DNA of 64,000 nucleotides from Lepidodermella squamata (Eukaryota > Animalia > Gastrotricha), in contig JBLDXI010000073.1 in assembly GCA_047495785.1 (NCBI GenBank), positions 62,001 through 126,000 on the forward strand. The letters are read 5' to 3'. Shown here one piece after another: positions 20,907 through 64,000 of this stretch. How positions within the stretch are numbered: the first letter of the stretch is position 1; each line of letters begins with the position of its first letter. Under the pieces are notes generated by a model. The model searched no databases. It saw nothing but the letters and a program-made list of their open reading frames with translations, and was not told where the DNA came from. The position numbers and the translations under genes were made by a program.

Positions 20907-21636
20907 AATAAATTTCACGTTTAATACGAAAAAATTATGAATGAGTAGTAATAAGATTTCTTAAGGTATATAATACGTGTATCGTGCCTTTTTTCTTTCA
21001 AGAGCTTAAAGTTATAACGCAGGGATGATAATTTGTATCTCATTCAAACTCGTGACGTGAAAGTTAATCTGCCTATGCAATGGTGTTGTTTAGTTGTGAG
21101 AATTTTTGAAAATAATCTGAAATTAAATATCACATAACGTAATACGATCCTAGCCTCAGAGGCCCTCTAATGATATGGAAATGTGGAGAAGGGAATTTTA
21201 CGGAATATTAGGGAATATTTCCGCTTTATTTTGTTATTTATGTCCTCGCAGCAAAATTTTCCAATTTTTATTTTTGATTTTTCAATTTTAAGTATTTAGG
21301 GTAATTCTAATTTTTCCATCATAATTTGTTAAAATTTATATTTAATTTTTTTTATTTTTATTTTTCCTCTTTTTTTGGTTTCACCACTGAATCTCTAATG
21401 ATTATCGGTGCTTCATATCTGTGTAACCATTATTTATAAAAAAATTATAAACCTTGCATCGCAATATACCTTGTGTGATTGTATAAGGCTCGAAGCTGTT
21501 AAAACTGACACTTCACTTTGAGAAATATAGCAAGCGAGTGGGTAATTATCTCAGGTGAGAAAACTACGCGAGTAACATGCCAGCTTTGAAGTAATATTGC
21601 AAGCGCACTCTCATCATAAAAAATCTCAAAAATACA

Positions 21637-37724: not shown

Positions 37725-40700
37725 ATGGCTGCAGGTGTCGGAAATACGTATTCATCAATGCAGGACTTCAAAGTCGAGAAGTTATTAGGAAGCGGTTATT
37801 TCGGCTCAACGATGCTTTGCAGGCGGACCTGGAACGACGTGGCGCCCTACGCTGTCAAGGCGGTCAACCTCACGCGAATTCTTGAAATTTACTCGACGGA
37901 GCCCAAATTCGCAGACAGGCTAGTGAAATTGAGCAAGGAAGAGGTAACGATTTTATCACGCTCTGCTTGCAGCCATTTGATACTATGTATTTTTGCTGTT
38001 GCAGCATGAGAAATTGGCCAAATTGTCACATCCAAATGTTGTTTCTGTATTTGGAGCTTTTATAGGTAGGCTGTGCTACCTGCTACCTTAATTCCTGATC
38101 GGCAAAAAATTGAAGAAAAGTTTGATCGTTTCTCTTCTAAAATGTTTGAAATTTGATGGAAATGTCAGTGGTTTTTAGTCGCTACTGGCTGTGGGAATTG
38201 AGCATATATCTCACCCCAGCCTCTCTCACCAGTCTTAAAAGAACAGAGAAACAACTTTAGGATTAACTTTTTCTACTTAAAAGGGAAAATCCTAATGAGG
38301 TACCAAATTTCATTTAATTCAATACCTAACCATTTTATTTGTTATGTAACTGGTTTGGGTTAGGTTGAGGTCATGGTTAGGTTAGGAATAGGGTAGGTTA
38401 GGGTCAAGTTAGAGTTGAGGGCTGGGTCTTAAACTTGGGAATTTCGAACATATTGCAATAATTTGGTACATAATAATGATGTTTGGTGATGAATTCACTA
38501 CATGCCTTATCTAAACGAAACAAAATGTAATTCCATTAACAAAACTTGACGCTTGAAGGGCTGAACTTTCCTTTTAACTTTCTTTTCTTGTAACAGAGGA
38601 AGATGCATCTGGATCTGTGGTTTATCATCTTGTTATGGAATACTGTTCGGGCGGAGATTTGGATGATTACATGATAAAGGCAAATGGCCGTCCCATTCCT
38701 CAAGTTTTGTTGTTAGAATGGTCGCTACAACTTGCGTCGGCTCTGGCTGCTCTGCATGAAAAGCGAGCGCTCCATCGAGACATCAAACCGAAAAATATTT
38801 TCTTGCAAAACGGTACTGTGAAACTCGGCGATTTTGGTTTAACGAAAATTGATGACAGGTAAGAATATCACTGAATATCAGTCTATTAGAAAGGATAAAT
38901 GTTTTAAAAAATGCCAGCGACACGTTCAGCTCTTCAAGCAGTATCCAAAGGACAGCGTACAACTTCAGGCTTGGTACCGAGCTGTACATGGCACCTGAAT
39001 TATTCGGCAATACTAAGCACTCGAACGAAAGCGATTGGTGGTCTTTAGGTGTAACTTTGTTCGAACTAGCCAACTTTTACAGGCCTGTTAGTCTTATTTC
39101 CCAGTATTGTGCTTTGTTCCACGATGTGGCTTCTTTTCAGTTCGAAAGTGCCCTGGATATCATGCAGTAAGTTCTATTCCTGAATTTCTTCGAAGAATCA
39201 CACTAATGAATTCGCAGATATGTTCGAAAGCCTTTTGATGATTCACGCGGTTATTCGTCCGAATTCCGAACCATTATTTTGGCATTTTTAATCAGAGATA
39301 GTTCGAGGCGCATCCCGCCGCTAGCTTTGCTCGACTCATTGAATGATCCGAATTCCCAGCATATCATGGGCTCAGCTAATGATAGCAGTTCGACAGAGTT
39401 GTTAGATCCAAATTCTCCAAGAATGGTACGCGAATTCCTTACTTGTGATACTTTCGATTTACTATGCCGCTTCAGCTTCTGTTTCGACTCATCAGGCAAC
39501 ACAAAAGTGACGAAATTGAATCGCTGTTATCAGACTCAACTCTAAAATTGGACGTCAATTACAAGAATGATGAAGGCCTTACGCCGTTGTTTCTGGCTGC
39601 ACAAGAGGCTCGCGCTGACATTGTAGACATTTTAGTGACGAAGTTCAAGGCTGATCCCCTATCTACGGACCTATTGGGAAGAACTCCGATGTACATCGCT
39701 GCTGATGGTGGTCGTACAAAGGCGATGAAAATTATTGGAGACTATTCAAAAGAAAGTGTCAACGTTGCGGCGGCCGATAGTAAGACACCAATATGGGCGG
39801 CAGTGGAAAACGGTCACGCTAAGGCCGTTGAAATATTGGCAAAAGAAATGGGTGCGAATGCGACAATAACGAACGAACAAGGCATGACATTGCTGCATGT
39901 TGCAGCCATGGAAGGTCACGTTGAAGTTGCGAGATTTCTGGCTGCGAATTTCATCAAGAATGTGAACACGAAAATGATCTCGGGCTACACACCCTTGCAT
40001 TTGGCAGTTATGAGAAGCCATTTTGACTTGGTGAAATTACTTGGACTTGAATTCTCAGCGGATGCAAAAGTTAAGTCGAATGATGGGAAGACGCCTTTGC
40101 ATGTGGCTGCTCAGAATGGGAACGCAGAAATAGTTCGAATGTTTGCCGGGAAAATGAAAGCTAATGTTAATGACCCTGATAGAGAAGGCAATACGCCTTT
40201 GTACCTTGCAGTCGAGAAAGGATACGTGGAAGTCGTACGTGATCTCGTTCAAGAATTCAGCGCAAAAGTTACAATTCCTCAAGACCGGTTTGTAAAATCG
40301 CCATTGCACGCAGCAGCTTGGAATGGACATGCAGAAATCTTGAAAATGATTATCGCAAAATTCAAAGGTGACATTAACATTCCGCATAAATTCGGCCGTA
40401 CGCTCTTGCAGGCTGCTGCTGAGGGTGGAAATGTGGAAATTGTTACAATTCTGGCCGGCGATTACAAAGCTGATGTCAATGCCACCGGCGAATATGACAA
40501 GACGCCCTTGCACGTTGCTGCTGCGAAGGGAAATGCGGAATGCATTAGAATTTTAGCCGGGAAATTCAAAGCTGATGTTGATGCCCGTGATAAAGATGGC
40601 AGGACGCCCTTGTTCATTGCTGCCTTAAACGGACAAGCGGAAGTCGTAAAAATCCTCGCTGGGGTATTCAAAGCTGATGTTGATGCCCCTGATGAAAATT

Positions 40701-41158
40701 GCGTAACGCCCTTGTATGCTGCAGCCGCAAGTGGAGAAGTGGAAGTCGTTAGAATCCTAGCCGGCGAATTCAAAGCTGATGTTAATGCCCGTGATGAAAG
40801 AGGCAGAACGCCCTTGTATGCTGCTGCCACAAATGGAGAAGCGGAAGTTGTTAGAATCCTAGCCGGCGAATTCAAAGCTGATGTTAATATCCCTGATATA
40901 GCTTATAGGACGCCCTTGTACATTGCTGCTCAGGAAGAAAATGCGGAAGTCGTTAGAATTCTAGCTATGGAATTCAAAGCTGGAGTTGTTGACCTTGATA
41001 AATATGGCAGAACGCCCCTGTATGTTGGTTCGTTTCCAGTGCATACGGTTATCGCTCGTATTCTTGGCGAACCGTTCATAGCAGTCAGGGAATTTGCATT
41101 GGAAGAGATTGACATGACTGCAGGGAAGTGGCATTGGTTTAAATGGGGTTACGGTTAG
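37725..41158 (+). CDS. NEK-like Ser/Thr protein kinase fused to ~14-15 ankyrin repeats (7 exons)
   Basis: Exons approx. 37725-37943, 38006-38065, 38597-38858, 38919-39086, 39141-39166, 39218-39425 and 39475-41158 splice in frame. Motifs GSGYFG, AVK, MEYCSGGDL, HRDIKPKNIFL, DFG, YMAPE and SDWWSLG, then repeated G-x-TPL-x-AA ankyrin units. Confidence 0.9.
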
Positions 41159-42491: not shown

Positions 42492-45197
42492 TCATGGCAG
42501 ATTCTCGCACAACGCATTGGCGTATGCATCGCAGATTGTAAATTGAGTATTGGCCTTTGAATCCAACACAACGCCTGTGCAAAATAAAATTAACAAGTGT
42601 CGCGGTATTGCATCAAAAAGTGGTACAACTCACAGTGAAATCTCTCGTAAAATGGGCCGTTATTCCACACTAAATAACTAGGCGGAGATGTGACAATGTC
42701 ACCGTTTGACCAAATAAACTCGTTTGTGCTGCTTATGCTGGCTCCGACGAACGCATACCGATTCAAATCACCGATGTAGTTGCGCAGGAGAGTTATCGCT
42801 TCATCTAGAACAGCTCGTGCTCTTATGATCGGCAGTCTCAAGCCTTTTCCGGCGCAAAATGCTTCTTGAACATCAAAAACACCGTCATTTATGAACAAGG
42901 ATAGGGCACCCTAAACGCAACACAAAGAGTCAAAATTTTGTAAGATCAGTGGATATACGTCAGAAGATTTACAGTTGTTGAGTTTTGGCATATTGCAAAT
43001 TCTTCCATGTAATCGCAGGCTACAATTCGGAGGCCATCCTCAGCTACTTCGATACCTACGAAACACAAAGCGGTAAACAGGAAAAGAGTCTTAGAATTTA
43101 AAAACTTCACATTGTCCGTCGCTGTCCGGTTCATTCCATTTCCACAGGGGCGAGAGAAAATCGACGAGAACACCGTCTGACCATCGGAATACAGCTGTCA
43201 GGCCAACAAAAGCCCGCGTGGTGAGATTTATGGCAGCGATTCTGTCTTCCTCGCTCAGGATGGAGGCGATGCGGCTGCTGTTAGTTGTGCAGTTTGTCGC
43301 TGCGTTTCGATATTGACTAACGATAGTAGATAGGTAGTACCGGTCTATGGGAGAAATTAAAATAATAAAATCCATCAGTGGCTGAAGTACCGGGAGACAG
43401 AGGTAAAGCACCCAACACCTCGAGAGGTCTTGGCAAGAAAACCCCCAAAAACTACAAGGGAGGCCATCAAGTTAGATAAATTAAGGGATGAATAAATCCT
43501 CCACCTCGAGGATCTTACTTTGTCCACTGAATTCTATTCAGTGCTTCCAGTTCAAAATATAAGGGTTACTGGTACAGCTTAAACGCTCCTGAATTCAATG
43601 AGGAATGAGGGGTATCGTACCCCCCCAGTTCACAAGGCCAAAGTGGAAAATCCCCAAAAAAACCACAGAGAGGACCCTTTGCCCTTTGGTCATAAAATTT
43701 GGGCCCGAAAATACCCCCTAGTTCGAGGATCCTACTTCGCGCACTGCTATGTCCCATCAATAAGCATCCTTATTTCTCTAAAGTCCCATTACAGAATTGG
43801 CTAGGGGGCTATCAGAAGGGAAAACTTGCCTTTCTCGCACAGCGTGCCAACATGTGAAGCTGGACATTTGCATGTTCCCGCCGTTTTGTTGAACGTTCCT
43901 CCATTCAGACAAGGCGATTGTTCCTGTGTGAATAGGTGATGTTAAAGCACTTGAGGCTCGATGAATTAAAGCCTACCTCGTTGAGATCAGCAAGACAGTT
44001 TCCGTAGTTATCAGCAAATTTTGTTGCATTGTTGAACAGTTTGACCTGGAACCGTAATAAGGTTATTTTTGCAGGCAAAGAGCTTGAAGGAAGCTACCAT
44101 ATTTGTTCCCTTTGGGCAATGGTTGTAGCAAGTGACATTGCCAGAGCTATCGCACTGAACAGCTTGCTGCGAGACGAATAAAACTCAATCAATAACTAAG
44201 AGGTCAGTGCAATCCCTCACAAATGATTCACAATTCTCCTTGAAGCGGTAGGTGAGAAAAGAATAGGCGGCGGTTTCGTTCGAGGCGCATCTCGTCGATT
44301 CAAGTCGGCAGGCAACGAAATCACGCGTGTCCTTGTTGAAACAGCGAACCTGTGACTTGAAATTATCAGGCACTTGCACTGAAAACAGGGAATTCAACAT
44401 TGCTCCTCTTGCGATAAGAGAAAAACCAACTCATCCCATTGAGGCACAGTTGTAAGCTTTTGAAGCCAGGCAGAGACGACTGTACAAAATTCTATAATCA
44501 GAGAGAAATGGCAGCGAAACTCATACAGTATTGGTTGGGCATGTGACTATTGAAGGTACACAGGTTACAATTCCACTTCCAGTCGAGCATCGGGTGAATG
44601 CTTGGTTCTGTAAAAGCGATAACAATTCGAAAAGGTAAACTTCAGCGGAGATCACTTACCGCAAAGGTGTCAATAGCCTTTTGGCACAGCGCCAAGTTCT
44701 GCTTAATGTAGACCGAGCCATAGTTGAACCGTTTTATCTGGAACAAAATAGAAATTCACAAGATTAAGGTCTCATTAGCAAGTAACTTGCCTCAATTTCG
44801 TCAGCAGGAAGAGGGATATTTCCTGGCCGACAGATAGGAGTCAACGCCTTGTACTTGTAGGCCAGCCGTGCTGCCTGGGATCACACATTTTTCGATGGTG
44901 ACAAGATAAAGAATGAAAAGAAATACCCCTTGTATGCACAATTGATAAGTTGTAAACTTCGAAGTTCCGATCTAACAGGGTAGGAATGATTTGAAACTGT
45001 TGTATATCGCTGTAGGAAGAACGAAGTCTTACCCGGTGCTCCATTGTCTGACTACAACCGGCTGTTAGCTTTCGGCAGTCTGTGAAACTGTTGTCGAACT
45101 GCGAGAAGCATCGGATGAAATCATCGCCGGCTACGACATCCACCGAAAATAAGGCGGAAAGAAATAAAAGGCATTCAAAAGCTTTGAATGGCAGCAT
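42492..45197 (-). CDS. Cys-module / EGF / C-type lectin family, copy 7 (subfamily B, more divergent, apparently intact)
   Basis: ATG 45197 MLPFKAFECLLFLSALF; same exon order; EGF exon CLNGGTFNKTAGTCKCPASHVGTLCE; ends LCENLP* at 42492. Confidence 0.85.
43376..43746. mobile_element. Degenerate hAT-like element in an intron of copy 7
   Basis: Imperfect TIRs CAGTGGCTGAAGTA / TACTTCGCGCACTG; right end shared with 13476-13532. No TSD recognised. Confidence 0.5.
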
Positions 45198-45600: not shown

Positions 45601-46082
45601 CAGAGACTTTGATTTGATTTGATTTGATTGTGATTTGATTTGATTTAGGGCATTTTTTGATGATTTGATTTACTGATGATTTGATTTAGAAAATTTCAGG
45701 ATGATTTGATTTGATTTAAATTTAGCCCACTTGATTTACTGCTGATTTATAAAAATCAGAACTCTCGGAATTCTCCTGTTACTAAACATGAGAACTCACA
45801 TTTGCCTCGAAGACAACTGCTTTCCAAAGCCTGGGGCTATTTGTGCCCTTTCATACTCATTCTGCCAAAACCAAGCTTGAAATTTGAATGAATCCCCAGA
45901 AATTTACCATGATACTCATGTTTCCCTATGCGAAAGATTTGATTTGATTTGATTTAAACGGGCCGGATGATTTGATTTCATTGATTTACTATCGACTTTT
46001 TGGGGATTTGATTTGAAATGATTGATTTACAAAGACCTGTGATTTACTGAATAAATCAAATCAAATCAAATCAAAGTCACTG
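45601..46082. mobile_element. hAT-like MITE with (GATTT)n subterminal repeats
   Basis: CAGAGACTTTGATTTGATTT ... AAATCAAATCAAAGTCACTG; TSD ATGTCATT at 45593-45600 and 46083-46090. Same design as 31845-32269 but a different interior. Confidence 0.9.
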
Positions 46083-48133
46083 ATGTCATTACATTACTTT
46101 TGTTAGCTTTGAGACTCTAAGTATGATTTCTGAAAGAATTTGTGCGGATGATCTTCAACGGACCCCCTACATCTGTAAAACGTTTTAGCGAGTTAATTCC
46201 GAAAATGAGGTCACGGCGAGCTAGTATTTAAAGGTGAGTTAAGGCGGGTAAAAACGACCCAGATGAATTGAATTATCTGAAACCAATCGAAAGGCTTCGA
46301 CTTCAGATGACATTTCTACCTTCGAGCATTTCCTTTTGTGATAAAAGGGAAATAAACCGCGACCCGAGGCGATGCACAGGTATGGGCCAAGTAATGGCGC
46401 CCAAATTGCCCCATGGAAAATTCAATTATGGGGGCGAGTTGGTCTAATTACCAGAACCTGTTGACCGTCCTACGACCACTTGAAAAGGTCAGGAGAAGTG
46501 ACAGGAAAATAAAAAAATTATGTAATCAATTTCAGATTTAATTTAACCGAGGAAGACAGAAAGGACAAGCCGTGTGCCATCGCTGTTTCCGGAAAGGCCA
46601 CTGATCTTTTGTCAACAATGTGTTTTTCGGCGATCACAACCTGTCATTTTAATCCTTTTTCAACTTCATCCTACTGGATAATTCTCTCAAAGATCTTCGA
46701 TTTTATTCATAGTTGATAAGCAATTTCTCGATTTAAAATTGTTTAAGCATGGAAGTGGAACCTTTGGAAACCTTTGGAGGCATGGAAACCAAGAAACAGG
46801 CCACAACAATAATTTCGATCACAACTATCGCCCAATGGGCTCGTTCTGAATCAGACTGACTCGGTTGCGACAGTTTGAGACTTCAAATTTCAAACAATTC
46901 TCCAGCTATAAAATCAACAATGGAGCGAAGCAGCGAGCCACAATTAGTTATTTATCAGTGGGTAGTAGCTCGCCCCGGCTTCCTGGCAGGAGCTGTAGGT
47001 TGTCTTCCACTACGAGTGCGGCCGAGCATGTTTACGACAACTTACTTAAGACAATTTGGAAATTTACTGAATTCTCCATCATCTTGTTCCAAGTTTCAGT
47101 CAATTATTGCAATCAAGAACAATCGTATATTGTATTTCAAAACCAGCCCTCAGAAGAGTGACCAGTTGGGCTACGCTCCTGCCTCAGCCAGAAATGCGCT
47201 CGCCAGCCCGCATCGTCATTCAAATTGAGCGTAGTTTTCGAACCAGCCTTGATGCTGATTAACTGTCCAAATTCGCCGATCGTTTCTTACGCGGAACAGC
47301 CGATGGTAAAATGCATCTAGACGGAGCGCTCCGATTCTGAATTTTTCTATTCACTCGTTCCAATGACGAATTCTTGAAGAGCATTTGGCTCATGAGAGGT
47401 AAAAGCTTTTTTCCGGATCATCAATTAAATTCAGGCCAGGCTTACTTTATTCATTCCACGAAATACAAATCAACCAGAATTATTTTTAGAAAGTAATTCT
47501 CTAGATAGTAGGTGATGATATTTTCTTTTTTATTAGCCGATTTATGTTCACACAAAATGTTCACCAGGTCATGTTGTGTTCACACCACGGGGGAATTTTG
47601 TTCGCAAAAAATGCTTCAATTTACTTCACCTTCCCGTGGTGTGAAAAAGCCTAAAATTATAGACTATGCGTGACAAGTGGGAGAGCGTCTTACGATTTTG
47701 AGTTCAATTCCAATTTCCATGGTATTGGAGTATTTCATCTCATTAGTGAGATTATTAGTGAAGTTAGTGATAAATGAGAGGCCCAAAATTTCATCAAAAT
47801 CCAAATTTAAAAAGCCAAAAGTCACCGGTATGTTTTAAAGAAAATCTACTATAGAAGATATAGGTTAATAGTGAAATATGGCACAGCTGTGAGACAGCTT
47901 GTGTTTCTTCACTCTATAAGATCAACTAATTCTTTAGCCATCTTAACGGTTATGGCGGTATTTCTAAGATCTAAGGTAAAACCTCTTTGAAAAGACTTGT
48001 TTTTAAACATATACCAAAAGTTTACTTCTGAAAATATATAGAGATGCATTTTTCATTAAAAAATAAATAAATAAATATTTTTCAATTCATATATTTCACA
48101 TTCGTTTTTTGATAGTTTTTGTAGCGGTGATCG

Positions 48134-51100
48134 CTAAGCAAAATTTGCCAGGCTTTCGATCAGAATTTGTTGAACAGCGCTTCGGATTGTGTCGAAATCG
48201 ACCGGGCCAGGTGGACCACGAGGGCCGGGTAGACCAATGCCGTTGCGGCCAGCAGGACCAGCAGGACCAGTAAGGCCAACGCCAGTTGGACCAGCGGGGC
48301 CAGCGGGACCAGTAAGGCCAACGCCAGTTGGACCAGGAAGGCCAACGCCAGTTGGACCAGTTGCCCCATCTCTACCAGAAGGACCAGTGGGCCCAGTATC
48401 ACCAGTTCTTCCAGGAAGACCAACACCTGGTCGACCAGCGGAACCCGTGGGACCAGTCATGCCAATACCTGTCGGGCCAGTAGGACCTGTGCCACCATCT
48501 CTGCCATCTCGGCCGGCCGGACCAGCTAGACCCGTTGCGCCTGCAATACCAGTCGCACCATTGTTACCATTTCTACCGGTCGGACCAGTCGCACCAGTCG
48601 CACCTGCGTCACCTGAGAAAAAAATCAAATTATTTGTAAAATTACAGCATCTACTAAGAGAAATTAACATCACCTTTCTGTCCTTTGTCTCCTTTCGGTG
48701 CCATATCTCCAGAAATACCCTTTTCGCCTGTAGAAATACAATAAGAAAGCCAAGCGAGAGTAAATAACAAACAAACAACAAATGATTTACAACAAATGCA
48801 CGACGACATTAAAAGATGGAAATTAGCTGGGTTGCCAGCATCAAACTCAAGAAAGACGATTATCAAACAGACCTTGCACGCCTTGGGGACCTTGCGGGCC
48901 TGAAAATCACGAATAAATTCATGCAAGCTTCAAACCTCAACTGCGAAGCTCAGAACTGTACCTTGAGAACCTAGCGGACCCTGTTCTCCAGTTGCACCAG
49001 TAACACCGGTCGCACCTGTAGCGGGGCGAAATCGGAACAAACGCCAGTTGAGAAGCTTGCTCTCGCTTCGAACCGAGCTCATTCACGTACCTTGTTGACC
49101 TGTGGCTCCTTCAGCGCCTGCATGGTTTTACAAAACAAGAGAAATTCCAGTCAATAAATCGTAACCAAGAGCCTGGATCCTAGCTTCAAAGCTCACCTGT
49201 CGCTCCAGTAGCGCCCTGCCCACCCAGTGGGCCTTCGGAACCTTGCACGCCTTGGGGACCTTGCGAACCAAGCGGACCTTGCGGGCCTGAAAATCACGAA
49301 TAAATTCATGCAAGCTTCAAACCTCAACTTCGAAGATCGCAACTGTACCTTGAGAACCTAGCGGGCCCTGATCTCCGGTTGCACCAGTCACTCCCGTCGC
49401 ACCTGCAGCGGGGCAAAACCGAAGTAGCTCAAAGTTTCGAACAAGCTCGGCTCATTCACGTACCTTGTTGACCTGTGGCTCCATCAGCGCCTGAATGGTT
49501 TCACAAAACAAGAGAAATCGTAACCAAGAGCCTGGATCCTAGCTTCAAAGCTCACCTGTCGCTCCAGTAGCGCCCTGCCCACCCAGTGGGCCTTCGGAAC
49601 CTTGCACGCCTTGGGGACCTTGCGAACCAAGCGGACCTTGCGGGCCTGAAAATCACGAATAAATTCATGCAAGCTTCAAACCTCAACTTCGAAGATCGCA
49701 ACTGTACCTTGAGAACCTAGCGGGCCCTGATCTCCGGTTGCACCAGTCACTCCCGTCGCACCTGCAGCGGGGCAAAACCGAAGTAGCTCAAAGTTTCGAA
49801 CAAGCTCGGCTCATTCACGTACCTTGTTGACCTGTGGCTCCATCAGCGCCTGAATGGTTTCACAAAACAAGAGAAATCGTAACCAAGAGCCTGGATCCTA
49901 GCTTCAAAGCTCACCTGTCGCTCCAGTAGCGCCCTGCCCACCCAGTGGGCCTTCGGAACCTTGCACGCCTTGGGGACCTTGCGAACCAAGCGGACCTTGC
50001 GGGCCTGAAAATCACGAATAAATTCATGCAAGCTTCAAACCTCAACTTCGAAGATCGCAACTGTACCTTGAGAACCTAGCGGGCCCTGATCTCCGGTTGC
50101 ACCAGTCACTCCCGTCGCACCTGCAGCGGGGCAAAACCGAAGTAGCTCAAAGTTTCGAACAAGCTCGGCTCATTCACGTACCTTGTTGACCTGTGGCTCC
50201 ATCAGCGCCTGAATGGTTTCACAAAACAAGAGAAATCGTAACCAAGAGCCTGGATCCTAGCTTCAAAGCTCACCTGTCGCTCCAGTAGCGCCCTGCCCAC
50301 CCAGTGGGCCTTCGGAACCTTGCACGCCTTGGGGACCTTGCGAACCAAGCGGACCTTGCGGGCCTGAAAATCACGAATAAATTCATGCAAGCTTCAAACC
50401 TCAACTTCGAAGATCGCAACTGTACCTTGAGAACCTAGCGGGCCCTGATCTCCGGTTGCACCAGTCACTCCCGTCGCACCTGCAGCGGGGCAAAACCGAA
50501 GTAGCTCAAAGTTTCGAACAAGCTCGGCTCATTCACGTACCTTGTTGACCTGTGGCTCCATCAGCGCCTGAATGGTTTCACAAAACAAGAGAAATCGTAA
50601 CCAAGAGCCTGGATCCTAGCTTCAAAGCTCACCTGTCGCTCCAGTAGCGCCCTGCCCACCCAGTGGGCCTTCGGAACCTTGCACGCCTTGGGGACCTTGC
50701 GAACCAAGCGGACCTTGCGGGCCTGGAAATCACGAATAAATTCATGCAAGCTTCAAACCTCAACTTCGAAGATCGCAACTGTACCTTGAGAACCTAGCGG
50801 GCCCTGATCTCCGGTTGCACCAGTCACTCCCGTCGCACCTGCAGCGGGGCAAAACCGAAGTAGCTCAAAGTTTCGAACAAGCTCGGCTCATTCACGTACC
50901 TTGTTGACCTGTGGCTCCATCAGCGCCTGAATGGTTTCACAAAACAAGAGAAATCGTAACCAAGAGCCTGGATCCTAGCTTCAAAGCTCACCTGTCGCTC
51001 CAGTAGCGCCCTGCCCACCCAGTGGGCCTTCGGAACCTTGCACGCCTTGGGGACCTTGCGAACCAAGCGGACCTTGCGGGCCTGAAAATCACGAATAAAT

Positions 51101-54100
51101 TCATGCAAGCTTCAAACCTCAACTTCGAAGATCGCAACTGTACCTTGAGAACCTAGCGGGCCCTGATCTCCGGTTGCACCAGTCACTCCCGTCGCACCTG
51201 CAGCGGGGCAAAACCGAAGTAGCTCAAAGTTTCGAACAAGCTCGGCTCATTCACGTACCTTGTTGACCTGTGGCTCCATCAGCGCCTGAATGGTTTCACA
51301 AAACAAGAGAAATCGTAACCAAGAGCCTGGATCCTAGCTTCAAAGCTCACCTGTCGCTCCAGTAGCGCCCTGCCCACCCAGTGGGCCTTCGGAACCTTGC
51401 ACGCCTTGGGGACCTTGCGAACCAAGCGGACCTTGCGGGCCTGGAAATCACGAATAAATTCATGCAAGCTTCAAACCTCAACTTCGAAGATCGCAACTGT
51501 ACCTTGAGAACCTAGCGGGCCCTGATCTCCGGTTGCACCAGTCACTCCCGTCGCACCTGCAGCGGGGCAAAACCGAAGTAGCTCAAAGTTTCGAACAAGC
51601 TCGGCTCATTCACGTACCTTGTTGACCTGTGGCTCCATCAGCGCCTGAATGGTTTCACAAAACAAGAGAAATCGTAACCAAGAGCCTGGATCCTAGCTTC
51701 AAAGCTCACCTGTCGCTCCAGTAGCGCCCTGCCCACCCAGTGGGCCTTCGGAACCTTGCACGCCTTGGGGACCTTGCGAACCAAGCGGACCTTGCGGGCC
51801 TGAAAATCACGAATAAATTCATGCAAGCTTCAAACCTCAACTTCGAAGATCGCAACTGTACCTTGAGAACCTAGCGGGCCCTGATCTCCGGTTGCACCAG
51901 TCACTCCCGTCGCACCTGCAGCGGGGCAAAACCGAAGTAGCTCAAAGTTTCGAACAAGCTCGGCTCATTCACGTACCTTGTTGACCTGTGGCTCCATCAG
52001 CGCCTGAATGGTTTCACAAAACAAGAGAAATCGTAACCAAGAGCCTGGATCCTAGCTTCAAAGCTCACCTGTCGCTCCAGTAGCGCCCTGCCCACCCAGT
52101 GGGCCTTCGGAACCTTGCACGCCTTGGGGACCTTGCGAACCAAGCGGACCTTGCGGGCCTGAAAATCACGAATAAATTCATGCAAGCTTCAAACCTCAAC
52201 TTCGAAGATCGCAACTGTACCTTGAGAACCTAGCGGGCCCTGATCTCCGGTTGCACCAGTCACTCCCGTCGCACCTGCAGCGGGGCAAAACCGAAGTAGC
52301 TCAAAGTTTCGAACAAGCTCGGCTCATTCACGTACCTTGTTGACCTGTGGCTCCATCAGCGCCTGAATGGTTTCACAAAACAAGAGAAATCGTAACCAAG
52401 AGCCTGGATCCTAGCTTCAAAGCTCACCTGTCGCTCCAGTAGCGCCCTGCCCACCCAGTGGGCCTTCGGAACCTTGCACGCCTTGGGGACCTTGCGAACC
52501 AAGCGGACCTTGCGGGCCTGAAAATCACGAATAAATTCATGCAAGCTTCAAACCTCAACTTCGAAGATCGCAACTGTACCTTGAGAACCTAGCGGGCCCT
52601 GATCTCCGGTTGCACCAGTCACTCCCGTCGCACCTGCAGCGGGGCAAAACCGAAGTAGCTCAAAGTTTCGAACAAGCTCGGCTCATTCACGTACCTTGTT
52701 GACCTGTGGCTCCATCAGCGCCTGAATGGTTTCACAAAACAAGAGAAATCGTAACCAAGAGCCTGGATCCTAGCTTCAAAGCTCACCTGTCGCTCCAGTA
52801 GCGCCCTGCCCACCCAGTGGGCCTTCGGAACCTTGCACGCCTTGGGGACCTTGCGAACCAAGCGGACCTTGCGGGCCTGGAAATCACGAATAAATTCATG
52901 CAAGCTTCAAACCTCAACTTCGAAGATCGCAACTGTACCTTGAGAACCTAGCGGGCCCTGATCTCCGGTTGCACCAGTCACTCCCGTCGCACCTGCAGCG
53001 GGGCAAAACCGAAGTAGCTCAAAGTTTCGAACAAGCTCGGCTCATTCACGTACCTTGTTGACCTGTGGCTCCATCAGCGCCTGAATGGTTTCACAAAACA
53101 AGAGAAATCGTAACCAAGAGCCTGGATCCTAGCTTCAAAGCTCACCTGTCGCTCCAGTAGCGCCCTGCCCACCCAGTGGGCCTTCGGAACCTTGCACGCC
53201 TTGGGGACCTTGCGAACCAAGCGGACCTTGCGGGCCTGAAAATCACGAATAAATTCATGCAAGCTTCAAACCTCAACTTCGAAGATCGCAACTGTACCTT
53301 GAGAACCTAGCGGGCCCTGATCTCCGGTTGCACCAGTCACTCCCGTCGCACCTGCAGCGGGGCAAAACCGAAGTAGCTCAAAGTTTCGAACAAGCTCGGC
53401 TCATTCACGTACCTTGTTGACCTGTGGCTCCATCAGCGCCTGAATGGTTTCACAAAACAAGAGAAATCGTAACCAAGAGCCTGGATCCTAGCTTCAAAGC
53501 TCACCTGTCGCTCCAGTAGCGCCCTGCCCACCCAGTGGGCCTTCGGAACCTTGCACGCCTTGGGGACCTTGCGAACCAAGCGGACCTTGCGGGCCTGGAA
53601 ATCACGAATAAATTCATGCAAGCTTCAAACCTCAACTTCGAAGATCGCAACTGTACCTTGAGAACCTAGCGGGCCCTGATCTCCGGTTGCACCAGTCACT
53701 CCCGTCGCACCTGCAGCGGGGCAAAACCGAAGTAGCTCAAAGTTTCGAACAAGCTCGGCTCATTCACGTACCTTGTTGACCTGTGGCTCCATCAGCGCCT
53801 GAATGGTTTCACAAAACAAGAGAAATCGTAACCAAGAGCCTGGATCCTAGCTTCAAAGCTCACCTGTCGCTCCAGTAGCGCCCTGCCCACCCAGTGGGCC
53901 TTCGGAACCTTGCACGCCTTGGGGACCTTGCGAACCAAGCGGACCTTGCGGGCCTGAAAATCACGAATAAATTCATGCAAGCTTCAAACCTCAACTTCGA
54001 AGATCGCAACTGTACCTTGAGAACCTAGCGGGCCCTGATCTCCGGTTGCACCAGTCACTCCCGTCGCACCTGCAGCGGGGCAAAACCGAAGTAGCTCAAA

Positions 54101-57100
54101 GTTTCGAACAAGCTCGGCTCATTCACGTACCTTGTTGACCTGTGGCTCCATCAGCGCCTGAATGGTTTCACAAAACAAGAGAAATCGTAACCAAGAGCCT
54201 GGATCCTAGCTTCAAAGCTCACCTGTCGCTCCAGTAGCGCCCTGCCCACCCAGTGGGCCTTCGGAACCTTGCACGCCTTGGGGACCTTGCGAACCAAGCG
54301 GACCTTGCGGGCCTGGAAATCACGAATAAATTCATGCAAGCTTCAAACCTCAACTTCGAAGATCGCAACTGTACCTTGAGAACCTAGCGGGCCCTGATCT
54401 CCGGTTGCACCAGTCACTCCCGTCGCACCTGCAGCGGGGCAAAACCGAAGTAGCTCAAAGTTTCGAACAAGCTCGGCTCATTCACGTACCTTGTTGACCT
54501 GTGGCTCCATCAGCGCCTGAATGGTTTCACAAAACAAGAGAAATCTTAACCAAGAGCCTGGATCCTAGCTTCAAAGCTCACCTGTCGCTCCAGTAGCGCC
54601 CTGCCCACCCAGTGGGCCTTCGGAACCTTGCACGCCTTGGGGACCTTGCGAACCAAGCGGACCTTGCGGGCCTGAAAATCACGAATAAATTCATGCAAGC
54701 TTCAAACCTCAACTTCGAAGATCGCAACTGTACCTTGAGAACCTAGCGGGCCCTGATCTCCGGTTGCACCAGTCACTCCCGTCGCACCTGCAGCGGGGCA
54801 AAACCGAAGTAGCTCAAAGTTTCGAACAAGCTCGGCTCATTCACGTACCTTGTTGACCTGTGGCTCCATCAGCGCCTGAATGGTTTCACAAAACAAGAGA
54901 AATCGTAACCAAGAGCCTGGATCCTAGCTTCAAAGCTCACCTGTCGCTCCAGTAGCGCCCTGCCCACCCAGTGGGCCTTCGGAACCTTGCACGCCTTGGG
55001 GACCTTGCGAACCAAGCGGACCTTGCGGGCCTGAAAATCACGAATAAATTCATGCAAGCTTCAAACCTCAACTTCGAAGATCGCAACTGTACCTTGAGAA
55101 CCTAGCGGGCCCTGATCTCCGGTTGCACCAGTCACTCCCGTCGCACCTGCAGCGGGGCAAAACCGAAGTAGCTCAAAGTTTCGAACAAGCTCGGCTCATT
55201 CACGTACCTTGTTGACCTGTGGCTCCATCAGCGCCTGAATGGTTTCACAAAACAAGAGAAATCGTAACCAAGAGCCTGGATCCTAGCTTCAAAGCTCACC
55301 TGTCGCTCCAGTAGCGCCCTGCCCACCCAGTGGGCCTTCGGAACCTTGCACGCCTTGGGGACCTTGCGAACCAAGCGGACCTTGCGGGCCTGGAAATCAC
55401 GAATAAATTCATGCAAGCTTCAAACCTCAACTTCGAAGATCGCAACTGTACCTTGAGAACCTAGCGGGCCCTGATCTCCGGTTGCACCAGTCACTCCCGT
55501 CGCACCTGCAGCGGGGCAAAACCGAAGTAGCTCAAAGTTTCGAACAAGCTCGGCTCATTCACGTACCTTGTTGACCTGTGGCTCCATCAGCGCCTGAATG
55601 GTTTCACAAAACAAGAGAAATCGTAACCAAGAGCCTGGATCCTAGCTTCAAAGCTCACCTGTCGCTCCAGTAGCGCCCTGCCCACCCAGTGGGCCTTCGG
55701 AACCTTGCACGCCTTGGGGACCTTGCGAACCAAGCGGACCTTGCGGGCCTGAAAATCACGAATAAATTCATGCAAGCTTCAAACCTCAACTTCGAAGATC
55801 GCAACTGTACCTTGAGAACCTAGCGGGCCCTGATCTCCGGTTGCACCAGTCACTCCCGTCGCACCTGCAGCGGGGCAAAACCGAAGTAGCTCAAAGTTTC
55901 GAACAAGCTCGACTCATTCACGTACCTTGTTGACCTGTGGCTCCATCAGCGCCTGAATGGTTTCACAAAACAAGAGAAATCGTAACCAAGAGCCTGGATC
56001 CTAGCTTCAAAGCTCACCTGTCGCTCCAGTAGCGCCCTGCCCACCCAGTGGGCCTTCGGAACCTTGCACGCCTTGGGGACCTTGCGAACCAAGCGGACCT
56101 TGCGGGCCTGGAAATCACGAATAAATTCATGCAAGCTTCAAACCTCAACTTCGAAGATCGCAACTGTACCTTGAGAACCTAGCGGGCCCTGATCTCCGGT
56201 TGCACCAGTCACTCCCGTCGCACCTGCAGCGGGGCAAAACCGAAGTAGCTCAAAGTTTCGAACAAGCTCGGCTCATTCACGTACCTTGTTGACCTGTGGC
56301 TCCATCAGCGCCTGAATGGTTTCACAAAACAAGAGAAATCGTAACCAAGAGCCTGGATCCTAGCTTCAAAGCTCACCTGTCGCTCCAGTAGCGCCCTGCC
56401 CACCCAGTGGGCCTTCGGAACCTTGCACGCCTTGGGGACCTTGCGAACCAAGCGGACCTTGCGGGCCTGAAAATCACGAATAAATTCATGCAAGCTTCAA
56501 ACCTCAACTTCGAAGATCGCAACTGTACCTTGAGAACCTAGCGGGCCCTGATCTCCGGTTGCACCAGTCACTCCCGTCGCACCTGCAGCGGGGCAAAACC
56601 GAAGTAGCTCAAAGTTTCGAACAAGCTCGGCTCATTCACGTACCTTGTTGACCTGTGGCTCCATCAGCGCCTGAATGGTTTCACAAAACAAGAGAAATCG
56701 TAACCAAGAGCCTGGATCCTAGCTTCAAAGCTCACCTGTCGCTCCAGTAGCGCCCTGCCCACCCAGTGGGCCTTCGGAACCTTGCACGCCTTGGGGACCT
56801 TGCGAACCAAGCGGACCTTGCGGGCCTGGAAATCACGAATAAATTCATGCAAGCTTCAAACCTCAACTTCGAAGATCGCAACTGTACCTTGAGAACCTAG
56901 CGGGCCCTGATCTCCGGTTGCACCAGTCACTCCCGTCGCACCTGCAGCGGGGCAAAACCGAAGTAGCTCAAAGTTTCGAACAAGCTCGGCTCATTCACGT
57001 ACCTTGTTGACCTGTGGCTCCATCAGCGCCTGAATGGTTTCACAAAACAAGAGAAATCGTAACCAAGAGCCTGGATCCTAGCTTCAAAGCTCACCTGTCG

Positions 57101-60100
57101 CTCCAGTAGCGCCCTGCCCACCCAGTGGGCCTTCGGAACCTTGCACGCCTTGGGGACCTTGCGAACCAAGCGGACCTTGCGGGCCTGAAATCACGAATAA
57201 ATTCATGCAAGCTTCAAACCTCAACTTCGAAGATCGCAACTGTACCTTGAGAACCTAGCGGGCCCTGATCTCCGGTTGCACCAGTCACTCCCGTCGCACC
57301 TGCAGCGGGGCAAAACCGAAGTAGCTCAAAGTTTCGAACAAGCTCGGCTCATTCACGTACCTTGTTGACCTGTGGCTCCATCAGCGCCTGAATGGTTTCA
57401 CAAACAAGAGAAATCGTAACCAAGAGCCTGGATCCTAGCTTCAAAGCTCACCTGTCGCTCCAGTAGCGCCCTGCCCACCCAGTGGGCCTTCGGAACCTTG
57501 CACGCCTTGGGGACCTTGCGAACCAAGCGGACCTTGCGGGCCTGGAAATCACGAATAAATTCATGCAAGCTTCAAACCTCAACTTCGAAGATCGCAACTG
57601 TACCTTGAGAACCTAGCGGGCCCTGATCTCCGGTTGCACCAGTCACTCCCGTCGCACCTGCAGCGGGGCAAAACCGAAGTAGCTCAAAGTTTCGAACAAG
57701 CTCGGCTCATTCACGTACCTTGTTGACCTGTGGCTCCATCAGCGCCTGAATGGTTTCACAAAACAAGAGAAATCGTAACCAAGAGCCTGGATCCTAGCTT
57801 CAAAGCTCACCTGTCGCTCCAGTAGCGCCCTGCCCACCCAGTGGGCCTTCGGAACCTTGCACGCCTTGGGGACCTTGCGAACCAAGCGGACCTTGCGGGC
57901 CTGAAAATCACGAATAAATTCATGCAAGCTTCAAACCTCAACTTCGAAGATCGCAACTGTACCTTGAGAACCTAGCGGGCCCTGATCTCCGGTTGCACCA
58001 GTCACTCCCGTCGCACCTGCAGCGGGGCAAAACCGAAGTAGCTCAAAGTTTCGAACAAGCTCGACTCATTCACGTACCTTGTTGACCTGTGGCTCCATCA
58101 GCGCCTGAATGGTTTCACAAAACAAGAGAAATCGTAACCAAGAGCCTGGATCCTAGCTTCAAAGCTCACCTGTCGCTCCAGTAGCGCCCTGCCCACCCAG
58201 TGGGCCTTCGGAACCTTGCACGCCTTGGGGACCTTGCGAACCAAGCGGACCTTGCGGGCCTGGAAATCACGAATAAATTCATGCAAGCTTCAAACCTCAA
58301 CTTCGAAGATCGCAACTGTACCTTGAGAACCTAGCGGGCCCTGATCTCCGGTTGCACCAGTCACTCCCGTCGCACCTGCAGCGGGGCAAAACCGAAGTAG
58401 CTCAAAGTTTCGAACAAGCTCGGCTCATTCACGTACCTTGTTGACCTGTGGCTCCATCAGCGCCTGAATGGTTTCACAAAACAAGAGAAATCGTAACCAA
58501 GAGCCTGGATCCTAGCTTCAAAGCTCACCTGTCGCTCCAGTAGCGCCCTGCCCACCCAGTGGGCCTTCGGAACCTTGCACGCCTTGGGGACCTTGCGAAC
58601 CAAGCGGACCTTGCGGGCCTGAAAATCACGAATAAATTCATGCAAGCTTCAAACCTCAACTTCGAAGATCGCAACTGTACCTTGAGAACCTAGCGGGCCC
58701 TGATCTCCGGTTGCACCAGTCACTCCCGTCGCACCTGCAGCGGGGCAAAACCGAAGTAGCTCAAAGTTTCGAACAAGCTCGGCTCATTCACGTACCTTGT
58801 TGACCTGTGGCTCCATCAGCGCCTGAATGGTTTCACAAAACAAGAGAAATCGTAACCAAGAGCCTGGATCCTAGCTTCAAAGCTCACCTGTCGCTCCAGT
58901 AGCGCCCTGCCCACCCAGTGGGCCTTCGGAACCTTGCACGCCTTGGGGACCTTGCGAACCAAGCGGACCTTGCGGGCCTGAAAATCACGAATAAATTCAT
59001 GCAAGCTTCAAACCTCAACTTCGAAGATCGCAACTGTACCTTGAGAACCTAGCGGGCCCTGATCTCCGGTTGCACCAGTCACTCCCGTCGCACCTGCAGC
59101 GGGGCAAAACCGAAGTAGCTCAAAGTTTCGAACAAGCTCGGCTCATTCACGTACCTTGTTGACCTGTGGCTCCATCAGCGCCTGAATGGTTTCACAAAAC
59201 AAGAGAAATCGTAACCAAGAGCCTGGATCCTAGCTTCAAAGCTCACCTGTCGCTCCAGTAGCGCCCTGCCCACCCAGTGGGCCTTCGGAACCTAGCACGC
59301 CTTGGGGACCTTGCGAACCAAGCGGACCTTGCGGGCCTGAAAATCACGAATAAATTCATGCAAGCTTCAAACCTCAACTTCGAAGATCGCAACTGTACCT
59401 TGAGAACCTAGCGGGCCCTGATCTCCGGTTGCACCAGTCACTCCCGTCGCACCTGCAGCGGGGCAAAACCGAAGTAGCTCAAAGTTTCGAACAAGCTCGG
59501 CTCATTCACGTACCTTGTTGACCTGTGGCTCCATCAGCGCCTGAATGGTTTCACAAAACAAGAGAAATCGTAACCAAGAGCCTGGATCCTAGCTTCAAAG
59601 CTCACCTGTCGCTCCAGTAGCGCCCTGCCCACCCAGTGGGCCTTCGGAACCTTGCACGCCTTGGGGACCTTGCGAACCAAGCGGACCTTGCGGGCCTGAA
59701 AATCACGAATAAATTCATGCAAGCTTCAAACCTCAACTTCGAAGATCGCAACTGTACCTTGAGAACCTAGCGGGCCCTGATCTCCGGTTGCACCAGTCAC
59801 TCCCGTCGCACCTGCAGCGGGGCAAAACCGAAGTAGCTCAAAGTTTCGAACAAGCTCGGCTCATTCACGTACCTTGTTGACCTGTGGCTCCATCAGCGCC
59901 TGAATGGTTTCACAAAACAAGAGAAATCGTAACCAAGAGCCTGGATCCTAGCTTCAAAGCTCACCTGTCGCTCCAGTAGCGCCCTGCCCACCCAGTGGGC
60001 CTTCGGAACCTTGCACGCCTTGGGGACCTTGCGAACCAAGCGGACCTTGCGGGCCTGAAAATCACGAATAAATTCATGCAAGCTTCAAACCTCAACTTCG

Positions 60101-63100
60101 AAGATCGCAACTGTACCTTGAGAACCTAGCGGGCCCTGATCTCCGGTTGCACCAGTCACTCCCGTCGCACCTGCAGCGGGGCAAAACCGAAGTAGCTCAA
60201 AGTTTCGAACAAGCTCGGCTCATTCACGTACCTTGTTGACCTGTGGCTCCATCAGCGCCTGAATGGTTTCACAAAACAAGAGAAATCGTAACCAAGAGCC
60301 TGGATCCTAGCTTCAAAGCTCACCTGTCGCTCCAGTAGCGCCCTGCCCACCCAGTGGGCCTTCGGAACCTTGCACGCCTTGGGGACCTTGCGAACCAAGC
60401 GGACCTTGCGGGCCTGAAAATCACGAATAAATTCATGCAAGCTTCAAACCTCAACTTCGAAGATCGCAACTGTACCTTGAGAACCTAGCGGGCCCTGATC
60501 TCCGGTTGCACCAGTCACTCCCGTCGCACCTGCAGCGGGGCAAAACCGAAGTAGCTCAAAGTTTCGAACAAGCTCGACTCATTCACGTACCTTGTTGACC
60601 TGTGGCTCCATCAGCGCCTGAATGGTTTCACAAAACAAGAGAAATCGTAACCAAGAGCCTGGATCCTAGCTTCAAAGCTCACCTGTCGCTCCAGTAGCGC
60701 CCTGCCCACCCAGTGGGCCTTCGGAACCTTGCACGCCTTGGGGACCTTGCGAACCAAGCGGACCTTGCGGGCCTGGAAATCACGAATAAATTCATGCAAG
60801 CTTCAAACCTCAACTTCGAAGATCGCAACTGTACCTTGAGAACCTAGCGGGCCCTGATCTCCGGTTGCACCAGTCACTCCCGTCGCACCTGCAGCGGGGC
60901 AAAACCGAAGTAGCTCAAAGTTTCGAACAAGCTCGGCTCATTCACGTACCTTGTTGACCTGTGGCTCCATCAGCGCCTGAATGGTTTCACAAAACAAGAG
61001 AAATCGTAACCAAGAGCCTGGATCCTAGCTTCAAAGCTCACCTGTCGCTCCAGTAGCGCCCTGCCCACCCAGTGGGCCTTCGGAACCTTGCACGCCTTGG
61101 GGACCTTGCGAACCAAGCGGACCTTGCGGGCCTGAAAATCACGAATAAATTCATGCAAGCTTCAAACCTCAACTTCGAAGATCGCAACTGTACCTTGAGA
61201 ACCTAGCGGGCCCTGATCTCCGGTTGCACCAGTCACTCCCGTCGCACCTGCAGCGGGGCAAAACCGAAGTAGCTCAAAGTTTCGAACAAGCTCGGCTCAT
61301 TCACGTACCTTGTTGACCTGTGGCTCCATCAGCGCCTGAATGGTTTCACAAAACAAGAGAAATCGTAACCAAGAGCCTGGATCCTAGCTTCAAAGCTCAC
61401 CTGTCGCTCCAGTAGCGCCCTGCCCACCCAGTGGGCCTTCGGAACCTTGCACGCCTTGGGGACCTTGCGAACCAAGCGGACCTTGCGGGCCTGAAAATCA
61501 CGAATAAATTCATGCAAGCTTCAAACCTCAACTTCGAAGATCGCAACTGTACCTTGAGAACCTAGCGGGCCCTGATCTCCGGTTGCACCAGTCACTCCCG
61601 TCGCACCTGCAGCGGGGCAAAACCGAAGTAGCTCAAAGTTTCGAACAAGCTCGGCTCATTCACGTACCTTGTTGACCTGTGGCTCCATCAGCGCCTGAAT
61701 GGTTTCACAAAACAAGAGAAATCGTAACCAAGAGCCTGGATCCTAGCTTCAAAGCTCACCTGTCGCTCCAGTAGCGCCCTGCCCACCCAGTGGGCCTTCG
61801 GAACCTTGCACGCCTTGGGGACCTTGCGAACCAAGCGGACCTTGCGGGCCTGAAAATCACGAATAAATTCATGCAAGCTTCAAACCTCAACTTCGAAGAT
61901 CGCAACTGTACCTTGAGAACCTAGCGGGCCCTGATCTCCGGTTGCACCAGTCACTCCCGTCGCACCTGCAGCGGGGCAAAACCGAAGTAGCTCAAAGTTT
62001 CGAACAAGCTCGGCTCATTCACGTACCTTGTTGACCTGTGGCTCCATCAGCGCCTGAATGGTTTCACAAAACAAGAGAAATCGTAACCAAGAGCCTGGAT
62101 CCTAGCTTCAAAGCTCACCTGTCGCTCCAGTAGCGCCCTGCCCACCCAGTGGGCCTTCGGAACCTTGCACGCCTTGGGGACCTTGCGAACCAAGCGGACC
62201 TTGCGGGCCTGGAAATCACGAATAAATTCATGCAAGCTTCAAACCTCAACTTCGAAGATCGCAACTGTACCTTGAGAACCTAGCGGGCCCTGATCTCCGG
62301 TTGCACCAGTCACTCCCGTCGCACCTGCAGCGGGGCAAAACCGAAGTAGCTCAAAGTTTCGAACAAGCTCGGCTCATTCACGTACCTTGTTGACCTGTGG
62401 CTCCATCAGCGCCTGAATGGTTTCACAAAACAAGAGAAATCGTAACCAAGAGCCTGGATCCTAGCTTCAAAGCTCACCTGTCGCTCCAGTAGCGCCCTGC
62501 CCACCCAGTGGGCCTTCGGAACCTTGCACGCCTTGGGGACCTTGCGAACCAAGCGGACCTTGCGGGCCTGAAAATCACGAATAAATTCATGCAAGCTTCA
62601 AACCTCAACTTCGAAGATCGCAACTGTACCTTGAGAACCTAGCGGGCCCTGATCTCCGGTTGCACCAGTCACTCCCGTCGCACCTGCAGCGGGGCAAAAC
62701 CGAAGTAGCTCAAAGTTTCGAACAAGCTCGGCTCATTCACGTACCTTGTTGACCTGTGGCTCCATCAGCGCCTGAATGGTTTCACAAAACAAGAGAAATC
62801 GTAACCAAGAGCCTGGATCCTAGCTTCAAAGCTCACCTGTCGCTCCAGTAGCGCCCTGCCCACCCAGTGGGCCTTCGGAACCTTGCACGCCTTGGGGACC
62901 TTGCGAACCAAGCGGACCTTGCGGGCCTGAAAATCACGAATAAATTCATGCAAGCTTCAAACCTCAACTTCGAAGATCGCAACTGTACCTTGAGAACCTA
63001 GCGGGCCCTGATCTCCGGTTGCACCAGTCACTCCCGTCGCACCTGCAGCGGGGCAAAACCGAAGTAGCTCAAAGTTTCGAACAAGCTCGGCTCATTCACG

Positions 63101-64000
63101 TACCTTGTTGACCTGTGGCTCCATCAGCGCCTGAATGGTTTCACAAAACAAGAGAAATCGTAACCAAGAGCCTGGATCCTAGCTTCAAAGCTCACCTGTC
63201 GCTCCAGTAGCGCCCTGCCCACCCAGTGGGCCTTCGGAACCTTGCACGCCTTGGGGACCTTGCGAACCAAGCGGACCTTGCGGGCCTGAAAATCACGAAT
63301 AAATTCATGCAAGCTTCAAACCTCAACTTCGAAGATCGCAACTGTACCTTGAGAACCTAGCGGGCCCTGATCTCCGGTTGCACCAGTCACTCCCGTCGCA
63401 CCTGCAGCGGGGCAAAACCGAAGTAGCTCAAAGTTTCGAACAAGCTCGGCTCATTCACGTACCTTGTTGACCTGTGGCTCCATCAGCGCCTGAATGGTTT
63501 CACAAAACAAGAGAAATCGTAACCAAGAGCCTGGATCCTAGCTTCAAAGCTCACCTGTCGCTCCAGTAGCGCCCTGCCCACCCAGTGGGCCTTCGGAACC
63601 TTGCACGCCTTGGGGACCTTGCGAACCAAGCGGACCTTGCGGGCCTGAAAATCACGAATAAATTCATGCAAGCTTCAAACCTCAACTTCGAAGATCGCAA
63701 CTGTACCTTGAGAACCTAGCGGGCCCTGATCTCCGGTTGCACCAGTCACTCCCGTCGCACCTGCAGCGGGGCAAAACCGAAGTAGCTCAAAGTTTCGAAC
63801 AAGCTCGGCTCATTCACGTACCTTGTTGACCTGTGGCTCCATCAGCGCCTGAATGGTTTCACAAAACAAGAGAAATCGTAACCAAGAGCCTGGATCCTAG
63901 CTTCAAAGCTCACCTGTCGCTCCAGTAGCGCCCTGCCCACCCAGTGGGCCTTCGGAACCTTGCACGCCTTGGGGACCTTGCGAACCAAGCGGACCTTGCG
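48134..64000 (-). CDS. Giant collagen-like protein, 3' portion (5' end outside window); at least 129 exons in window
   Basis: 42 three-exon units (last unit: 49286-49197, 49117-49091, 49015-48962), then exons 48899-48873 (GPQGPQGVQ), 48727-48674 ([18 protein letters not shown]) and 48612-48134 (GDAGATGAT...[30 protein letters not shown]). All introns are GT-AG and phase 1. Confidence 0.9.
48900..64000 (-). repeat. 359-bp tandem array (42 units, nearly identical) forming an exon-intron cassette of the collagen gene
   Basis: The 3' border of exon A recurs from 49197 to 63914, which is 41 x 359 minus two 1-bp intron deletions. Unit = 90+65+27+61+54+62 = 359. Confidence 0.97.

Follow-up and report, generated by a model that had tools for sequence, protein, structure and literature searches.

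How can a collagen triple helix be built from a repeat that carries no proline at the Y position of its Gly-X-Y triplets and neither lysine nor arginine, and does such a repeat belong to a working gene? The question is raised by 64,000 nucleotides of the gastrotrich Lepidodermella squamata (GenBank assembly GCA_047495785.1, contig JBLDXI010000073.1, positions 62,001 to 126,000; hereafter the window, whose numbering we use), which end in a long tandem array. We favour, as reasonably probable, the reading that this array belongs to a real minus-strand gene for a secreted, polyanionic giant collagen, of which the window holds the 3' part and whose repeat has no hydroxyproline (Hyp) at Y.

Tandem Repeats Finder delimits a 359-bp unit present in 41.4 copies with 99% matches (49156-64000), and the array has a GC content of 54%, against about 40% in the remaining window. 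It contains no long open reading frame (ORF) on either strand. We rejected read-through translation of the unit, as 359 is not divisible by three and stop codons interrupt at least one frame of every unit intron. The minus strand of each unit resolves into exons of 27, 54 and 90 bp and introns of 61, 62 and 65 bp. All these introns run from GT to AG and are in phase 1, splitting a Gly codon after its first base. Exons have 65% GC and introns 45%, the introns making up 52% of the unit. The features of the array are the following.

49197..64000 (minus strand): cassette array, 41 complete three-exon units and an edge-cut 90-bp exon; 41 x 57 residues of unbroken Gly-X-Y
49464..49490 (minus strand): representative 27-bp exon, three triplets, phase 1-1
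49349..49402 (minus strand): representative 54-bp exon, six triplets, Thr-rich, phase 1-1
49197..49286 (minus strand): representative and last perfect 90-bp exon, ten triplets, with all five Pro
59293..59295 (minus strand): sole exon variant among the 41 perfect units, CAA to CTA, Gln to Leu at a Y site

The 41 complete units, another four small exons and a terminal exon of 479 bp encode at least 2,550 residues within the window. The edge at position 64000 interrupts a 90-bp exon, and the gene therefore extends further in the 5' direction. Read directly from the exons, about 803 Gly-X-Y triplets follow each other without interruption; at 0.286 nm per residue, the unbroken triplets correspond to a helix of about 0.72 micrometres. 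Since every exon is of phase 1-1 and a multiple of 9 bp, exon skipping would always stay in frame, and the length of the product could vary. Single exons served as queries for protein searches and folding. The 90-bp exon on its own stays below the threshold of Pfam Collagen (E 0.0012, 19 bits, for a cut-off of 27.2 bits).

Exon-wise translation of the consensus gives 19 Gly-X-Y triplets per unit. The Y sites hold 8 Gln, 6 Thr, 3 Leu, 1 Glu and 1 Asp, and the X sites 6 Ala, 5 Pro, 3 Ser, 2 Val, 1 Gln, 1 Asp and 1 Gly. All five Pro are thus at X and none (0%) at Y. Lys, Arg and Cys are absent, and the three acidic residues leave each chain a net charge of -3 for every 57 residues. The unit draws on only ten residue types, and Gln, nine of its 57 residues over X and Y together, is the commonest at Y. 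The sequence-only reading, an earlier account made from the letters of this DNA, had given the same counts at Y, the same charge and the same confinement of Pro to X, and the translation matches it exactly. The alternation of Thr-rich and Pro/Gln-rich blocks every 57 residues that it described is there as well: nine Pro-free triplets rich in Thr and Ala, the first three encoded by the 27-bp exon (GAD GAT GQQ), precede ten Thr-free Pro/Gln triplets with all five Pro. It was also right that the repeat cannot use Hyp at Y or Lys cross-links. Neither Y-Pro nor Lys is encoded there, which leaves Y-position prolyl 4-hydroxylation and lysyl oxidase without a residue to act on. Nor does the repeat have a trypsin-type cleavage site, Lys and Arg being absent, as that account had stated. 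Cys occurs in none of the exons in the window.

Downstream of the last perfect unit, the gene changes character over a short distance.

49091..49117 (minus strand): exon A of a degenerate last unit, 27 bp, Asp to Glu relative to the repeat
48962..49015 (minus strand): exon B of the degenerate last unit, 54 bp
48873..48899 (minus strand): exon C of the degenerate last unit, 27 bp, GPQ GPQ GVQ
48674..48727 (minus strand): exon D, 54 bp, 18 residues of which four are Lys; the Gly register is first broken here, by a Gly to Ala substitution
48134..48612 (minus strand): terminal exon, 479 bp, stop codon at 48134-48136
48137..48202 (minus strand): non-collagen C-terminal tail, 22 residues after the collagen run

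The array thus joins a unique 3' end and a stop codon in frame, which supports the existence of a gene. The terminal exon matches Pfam Collagen (PF01391) with an E-value of 3.4e-12 (46.4 bits, cut-off 27.2 bits) and codes for 41 triplets with six one-residue breaks of the form G-[IV]-G. Its Y sites include 19 Thr, 5 Pro and 1 Arg, and its X sites 17 Pro and 7 Arg. The sequence-only reading went astray here, since it equated the repeat with the entire protein. The C-terminus is closer to an ordinary collagen, with interruptions, Arg, Lys and Y-Pro, and the rule of no Y-Pro and no Lys or Arg fails in the last 200 or so residues (48134-48727). When folded by AlphaFold2 from the single sequence, residues 139-157 of the terminal exon are predicted as an alpha-helix of 19 residues (pLDDT 81-95); the collagen part stays below a pLDDT of 50, as expected for one chain alone. 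No relative of the 22-residue tail was found in Pfam or the PDB.

How uniform is the array, and what does this tell of its history? A pattern scan recovered 42 copies each of the 27-bp and the 54-bp exon (the degenerate last unit included) and 41 of the 90-bp exon, all of them with intact AG and GT flanks. Variation lies mostly in the introns. A C/T site in the first unit intron is variant in 3 of 40 units, and a T/C site immediately before the CAG acceptor of the second is variant in 13 of 40, as a scattered mosaic. The only two 1-bp deletions among the units are both intronic, and this confinement of indels to introns also supports a gene. Overall, the units are about 99.8% identical, introns included. 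The 359-bp cassette must therefore have been amplified in tandem very recently, or its copies are still being homogenised. It also follows that one unit has been copied many times and that the effective sample is 19 triplets, not 800 independent ones.

Sequencing runs added some comparative evidence. In an environmental run labelled as metagenomic RNA-Seq (X1), short contigs 90-99% alike cover 48104-48430 and 48876-49154 with their introns retained, and a close relative of the window's animal thus lives in the sampled environment. In exon C, an X1 contig has exactly 18 nt inserted between two codons; GVV GAQ is gained, and frame and Gly register are preserved. Within the tail, there are four synonymous changes and one conservative Asp to Glu change in the core of the predicted helix, the others falling only in the last two residues. 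These differences, from a small sample, give some sign of coding constraint. In a second run, X2, the probable source DNA, word depth is 33-38 in the flanks and 570-950 in repeat contigs (13-27 times), which we take as a sign of multiple copies only and not as a copy number. The degenerate-cassette sequence (48913-49154) itself has a word depth of 868-949 in X2, about 25 times that of the flank. Some X2 contig ends leave this cassette and enter other collagen exons (e.g. GPQ GLT GPT), which shows that there are paralogous cassettes elsewhere in the genome, with Gln, Thr or Ile also at Y. Given the high depth and these contig ends, the degenerate type of cassette has itself been amplified elsewhere, probably in a paralogous array.

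Several observations weigh against a working giant collagen gene. With units about 99.8% identical, intact frames are weak evidence for selection. The copy number comes from one assembly, and the word depth of a single contig in the repeat is about 16 times that of the flank, not 41 times, though such a depth does not count copies. The run search found no RNA run containing the stretch, and the matching contigs in X1 and X2 are DNA-like. The product is absent from both protein collections searched (by a word search and a full representative search). The N-terminus lies beyond the window, and a signal peptide would hence be outside the view. Finally, unglycosylated (Gly-Pro-Thr)10 is a random coil that becomes a helix when galactosylated (PMC11923368), so an unmodified helix could be marginal.

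This last point bears directly on how the repeat could fold. To place its composition among known collagens, we compared positional usage with Table 4 of Ghosh 2012 (PMC3368898).

57-residue unit: X Pro 26%, X Ala 32%, Y Thr 32%, Y Gln 42%, Y Pro 0%
Gram-positive bacterial collagens (PMC3368898): X Pro 31%, X Ala 23%, Y Thr 48%, Y Gln 18%, Y Pro 3.7%
Human fibrillar collagens (PMC3368898): X Pro 31.1%, X Ala 9.8%, Y Thr 4.1%, Y Gln 7.3%, Y Pro(Hyp) 33.5%

The unit shares with the Gram-positive bacterial and phage collagen-like proteins of the BclA or Scl type Pro and Ala at X, Thr and Gln at Y, and almost no Y-Pro (PMC3368898). We agree with the likeness to BclA, and to Riftia cuticle collagen, that the sequence-only reading saw in the Thr at Y. 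Bacterial collagen-like proteins do not need Hyp (PMC8968730), and Hyp-free ones longer than about 150 residues melt at about 35-39 C, the recombinant proteins levelling off at 36-39 C with little dependence on sequence (PMC7824840). Among animals, the sawfly silk collagens SfC A-C also lack Hyp, with Pro at 38-53% of X and 4-8% of Y over 60-62 triplets (PMC3790195). They resemble the window repeat in being animal, Hyp-free, X-biased in their Pro and poor in Y-Pro, a likeness of composition, and are used outside the body. Yet, they are short and are not built from cassettes, and PMC3790195, which treats their composition in terms of ordinary collagen triplets, gives no hint of Y sites dominated by Gln and Thr. 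The premise of the sequence-only reading that a stable helix needs Hyp at Y was too strong: the Hyp-free bacterial (PMC7824840) and sawfly (PMC3790195) collagens are stable, which makes an unmodified helix a live option.

If the gene is real, its three chains would associate at the C-terminus, through the predicted amphipathic tail helix and the only triplets that contain Y-Pro. The helix would then zip from C to N, the usual collagen direction (PMC11923368), through more than 800 triplets that cannot hold Y-Hyp. The stability of the repeat would come from its X-Pro (26% of X), from hydration networks of Gln and Thr (74% of Y), in line with a proposal for Hyp-free bacterial collagens, and from sheer length. 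Sugars on Thr would bring extra stability without being required. The product would be a strongly acidic rod of at least 0.7 micrometres, with Lys only in the part encoded by a single 54-bp exon close to the C-terminus, and a cuticle-type or extracorporeal structural role would be its most likely use. Since the charges of the repeat are all acidic, the charge-pair staggering of fibrillar collagens would be impossible for such a rod. One might speculate that such rods would assemble side by side only with the help of cations, partner proteins, the three Leu of each unit or Gln cross-links. A bolder proposal, to which we give very little credence, is that the animal adopted the Hyp-independent 'bacterial' helix code (Pro or Ala at X, Gln or Thr at Y) for a micrometre-scale polyanionic rod that is free of Lys and Arg and immune to trypsin-type proteases, that a transglutaminase and not lysyl oxidase links it, from the repeat Gln to the C-terminal Lys cluster of neighbours, and that the array is still growing through cassette amplification.

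Alternatively, the helix might fold only when modified, by O-glycosylation of Thr at Y as in Riftia, by hydroxylation of Pro at X as in earthworms, or by both. The repeat has six G-X-Thr triplets per unit, and 19 of the 41 triplets of the terminal exon are of this kind. The switch of (GPT)10 from coil to helix upon galactosylation (PMC11923368) speaks for such a mechanism, PMC11766948 ties the stability of Riftia cuticle collagen to glycosylated Thr, and earthworm cuticle collagen is rich in X-position 4-Hyp (PMC8233474). Yet, this 4-Hyp shows no positive correlation with melting temperature (PMC8233474), the commonest Y residue of the repeat is Gln and not Thr, and the bacterial and sawfly collagens fold with neither Hyp nor sugar. 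The sequence says nothing on modification. We thus regard a strict dependence on modification as possible but unlikely.

It is less likely still, and in our view rather improbable, that the array is a recent, satellite-like expansion whose predicted translation does not take place, or has ceased, be it a silent or decaying copy, an array inflated by assembly or the source of a cassette-skipping transcript. Near-identical units, introns included, are what one would expect of it, and the search results in RNA runs and protein collections would fit, as would depth figures that do not reproduce 41 copies. Yet, more than 120 pairs of splice sites and all frames are intact, and both 1-bp indels fell in introns, which make up about half of the unit. 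An array in frame with a unique 3' end and stop codon also speaks against it, and so does the X1 relative, which keeps frame and Gly register through an 18-nt indel. As for an assembly artefact, the mosaic of intron variants argues against simple duplication by the assembler. Hence, a translated collagen gene remains the reading we prefer.

We rejected bacterial contamination or gene transfer in view of the spliceosomal introns and the animal context: unlike BclA or Scl proteins, the window gene has more than 120 GT-AG introns in split Gly codons between exons that are multiples of 9 bp, is 10-50 times longer and has animal genes, for a trypsin-like protease and ankyrin proteins, as its neighbours. 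No BclA-type C-terminal domain was detected by Pfam in the terminal exon. The comparison of the C-terminus with databases, proposed with the sequence-only reading, did return mainly microbial and viral collagen-like proteins (45-60% identity). Yet, all searches (word search, representative search with 15,208 hits, metagenome scan with 80 loci, ESM Atlas) were swamped by compositional G-X-Thr matches, and the tail was unmatched: of four 6-residue pieces of it, none is present in 270 retrieved proteins. With such matches mostly microbial or viral, and the tail pieces in none of them, the likeness to bacterial collagens is one of composition and does not point to kinship.

To which animal collagens might the gene then belong? 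The score of the terminal exon and the roughly 803 consecutive triplets make the product a member of the collagen triple-helix repeat proteins (PF01391). Fibrillar collagens have a C-terminal COLF1/NC1 propeptide and phase-0 exons of 45, 54, 99 or 108 bp. The window gene, whose N-terminus is beyond the window, ends in a 22-residue tail without Pfam match and has introns all in phase 1, so we rejected this class. Type IV or basement-membrane collagens have C-terminal C4 (NC1) domains and many interruptions; we rejected them as well, the terminal exon lacking a C4 domain and the repeat being uninterrupted. Annelid cuticle collagens are epidermal, with a micrometre-long helix, a terminal globule, and Hyp at X or Y or glycosylated Thr at Y. 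The length of the window gene's helix (at least 0.72 micrometres) and its Y-Thr would suit this class, which also has a very long triple helix and, in Riftia, Thr at Y in place of Hyp. Yet, the published giant annelid collagens (predicted in Alvinella, Paralvinella and Eisenia) have Pro at 21-33% of Y (PMC12403961), against 0% in the window repeat, where Gln dominates. Nematode-type cuticle collagens, with short interrupted Gly-X-Y blocks between conserved Cys clusters (PMC11766948), were rejected in view of the lack of Cys in all exons of the window and of the more than 2,500 residues encoded. A literature search, with most subscription journals outside its coverage, found no animal collagen with Y sites dominated by Gln and Thr.

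The locus is thus a variant of known themes, namely Hyp-free collagen composition, giant invertebrate collagens and the amplification of exon cassettes. If expressed, it would be a natural animal test of how long a triple helix can be without an imino acid at Y or a basic residue in its repeat, with more than 800 triplets in a design known from the short collagens of bacteria and sawflies. It is relevant to a long-standing problem, namely what takes the place of hydroxyproline in the cuticle collagens of invertebrates, and it shows collagen genes growing through the amplification of whole exon-intron cassettes. The simplicity of the single unit, with ten residue types and a 57-residue period, eases its expression and melting with or without sugars.

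The remaining window holds other genes of interest. A trypsin-like serine protease with a signal-like start is encoded by a single ORF at 19920-20918 on the minus strand (Pfam Trypsin, 5.5e-45); its closest database relatives are 28-38% identical, and it is followed on the same strand by a Thr-rich mucin-like ORF (19403-19786). On the plus strand lie an ankyrin-repeat ORF of 564 residues (39464-41158), whose exact product has no entry in the gene-position index, and, 10 kb upstream, a shorter and very similar paralogue (29163-29732). Rfam and tRNA searches gave no matches within the window. Five ORFs (7087-7431, 26401-26778, 32871-33218, 44841-45197 and 21637-22251) share the Cys-rich motif R-C-F-x-x-x-D-x-x-F-x-x-C-R, those at 26401 and 32871 being near-duplicates. 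The one that was searched has no Pfam match, and by their sequence they look like a local family of small secreted Cys-rich modules. Finally, a TTTGA-based microsatellite (45608-45717) lies just upstream of the 3' flank of the collagen gene.

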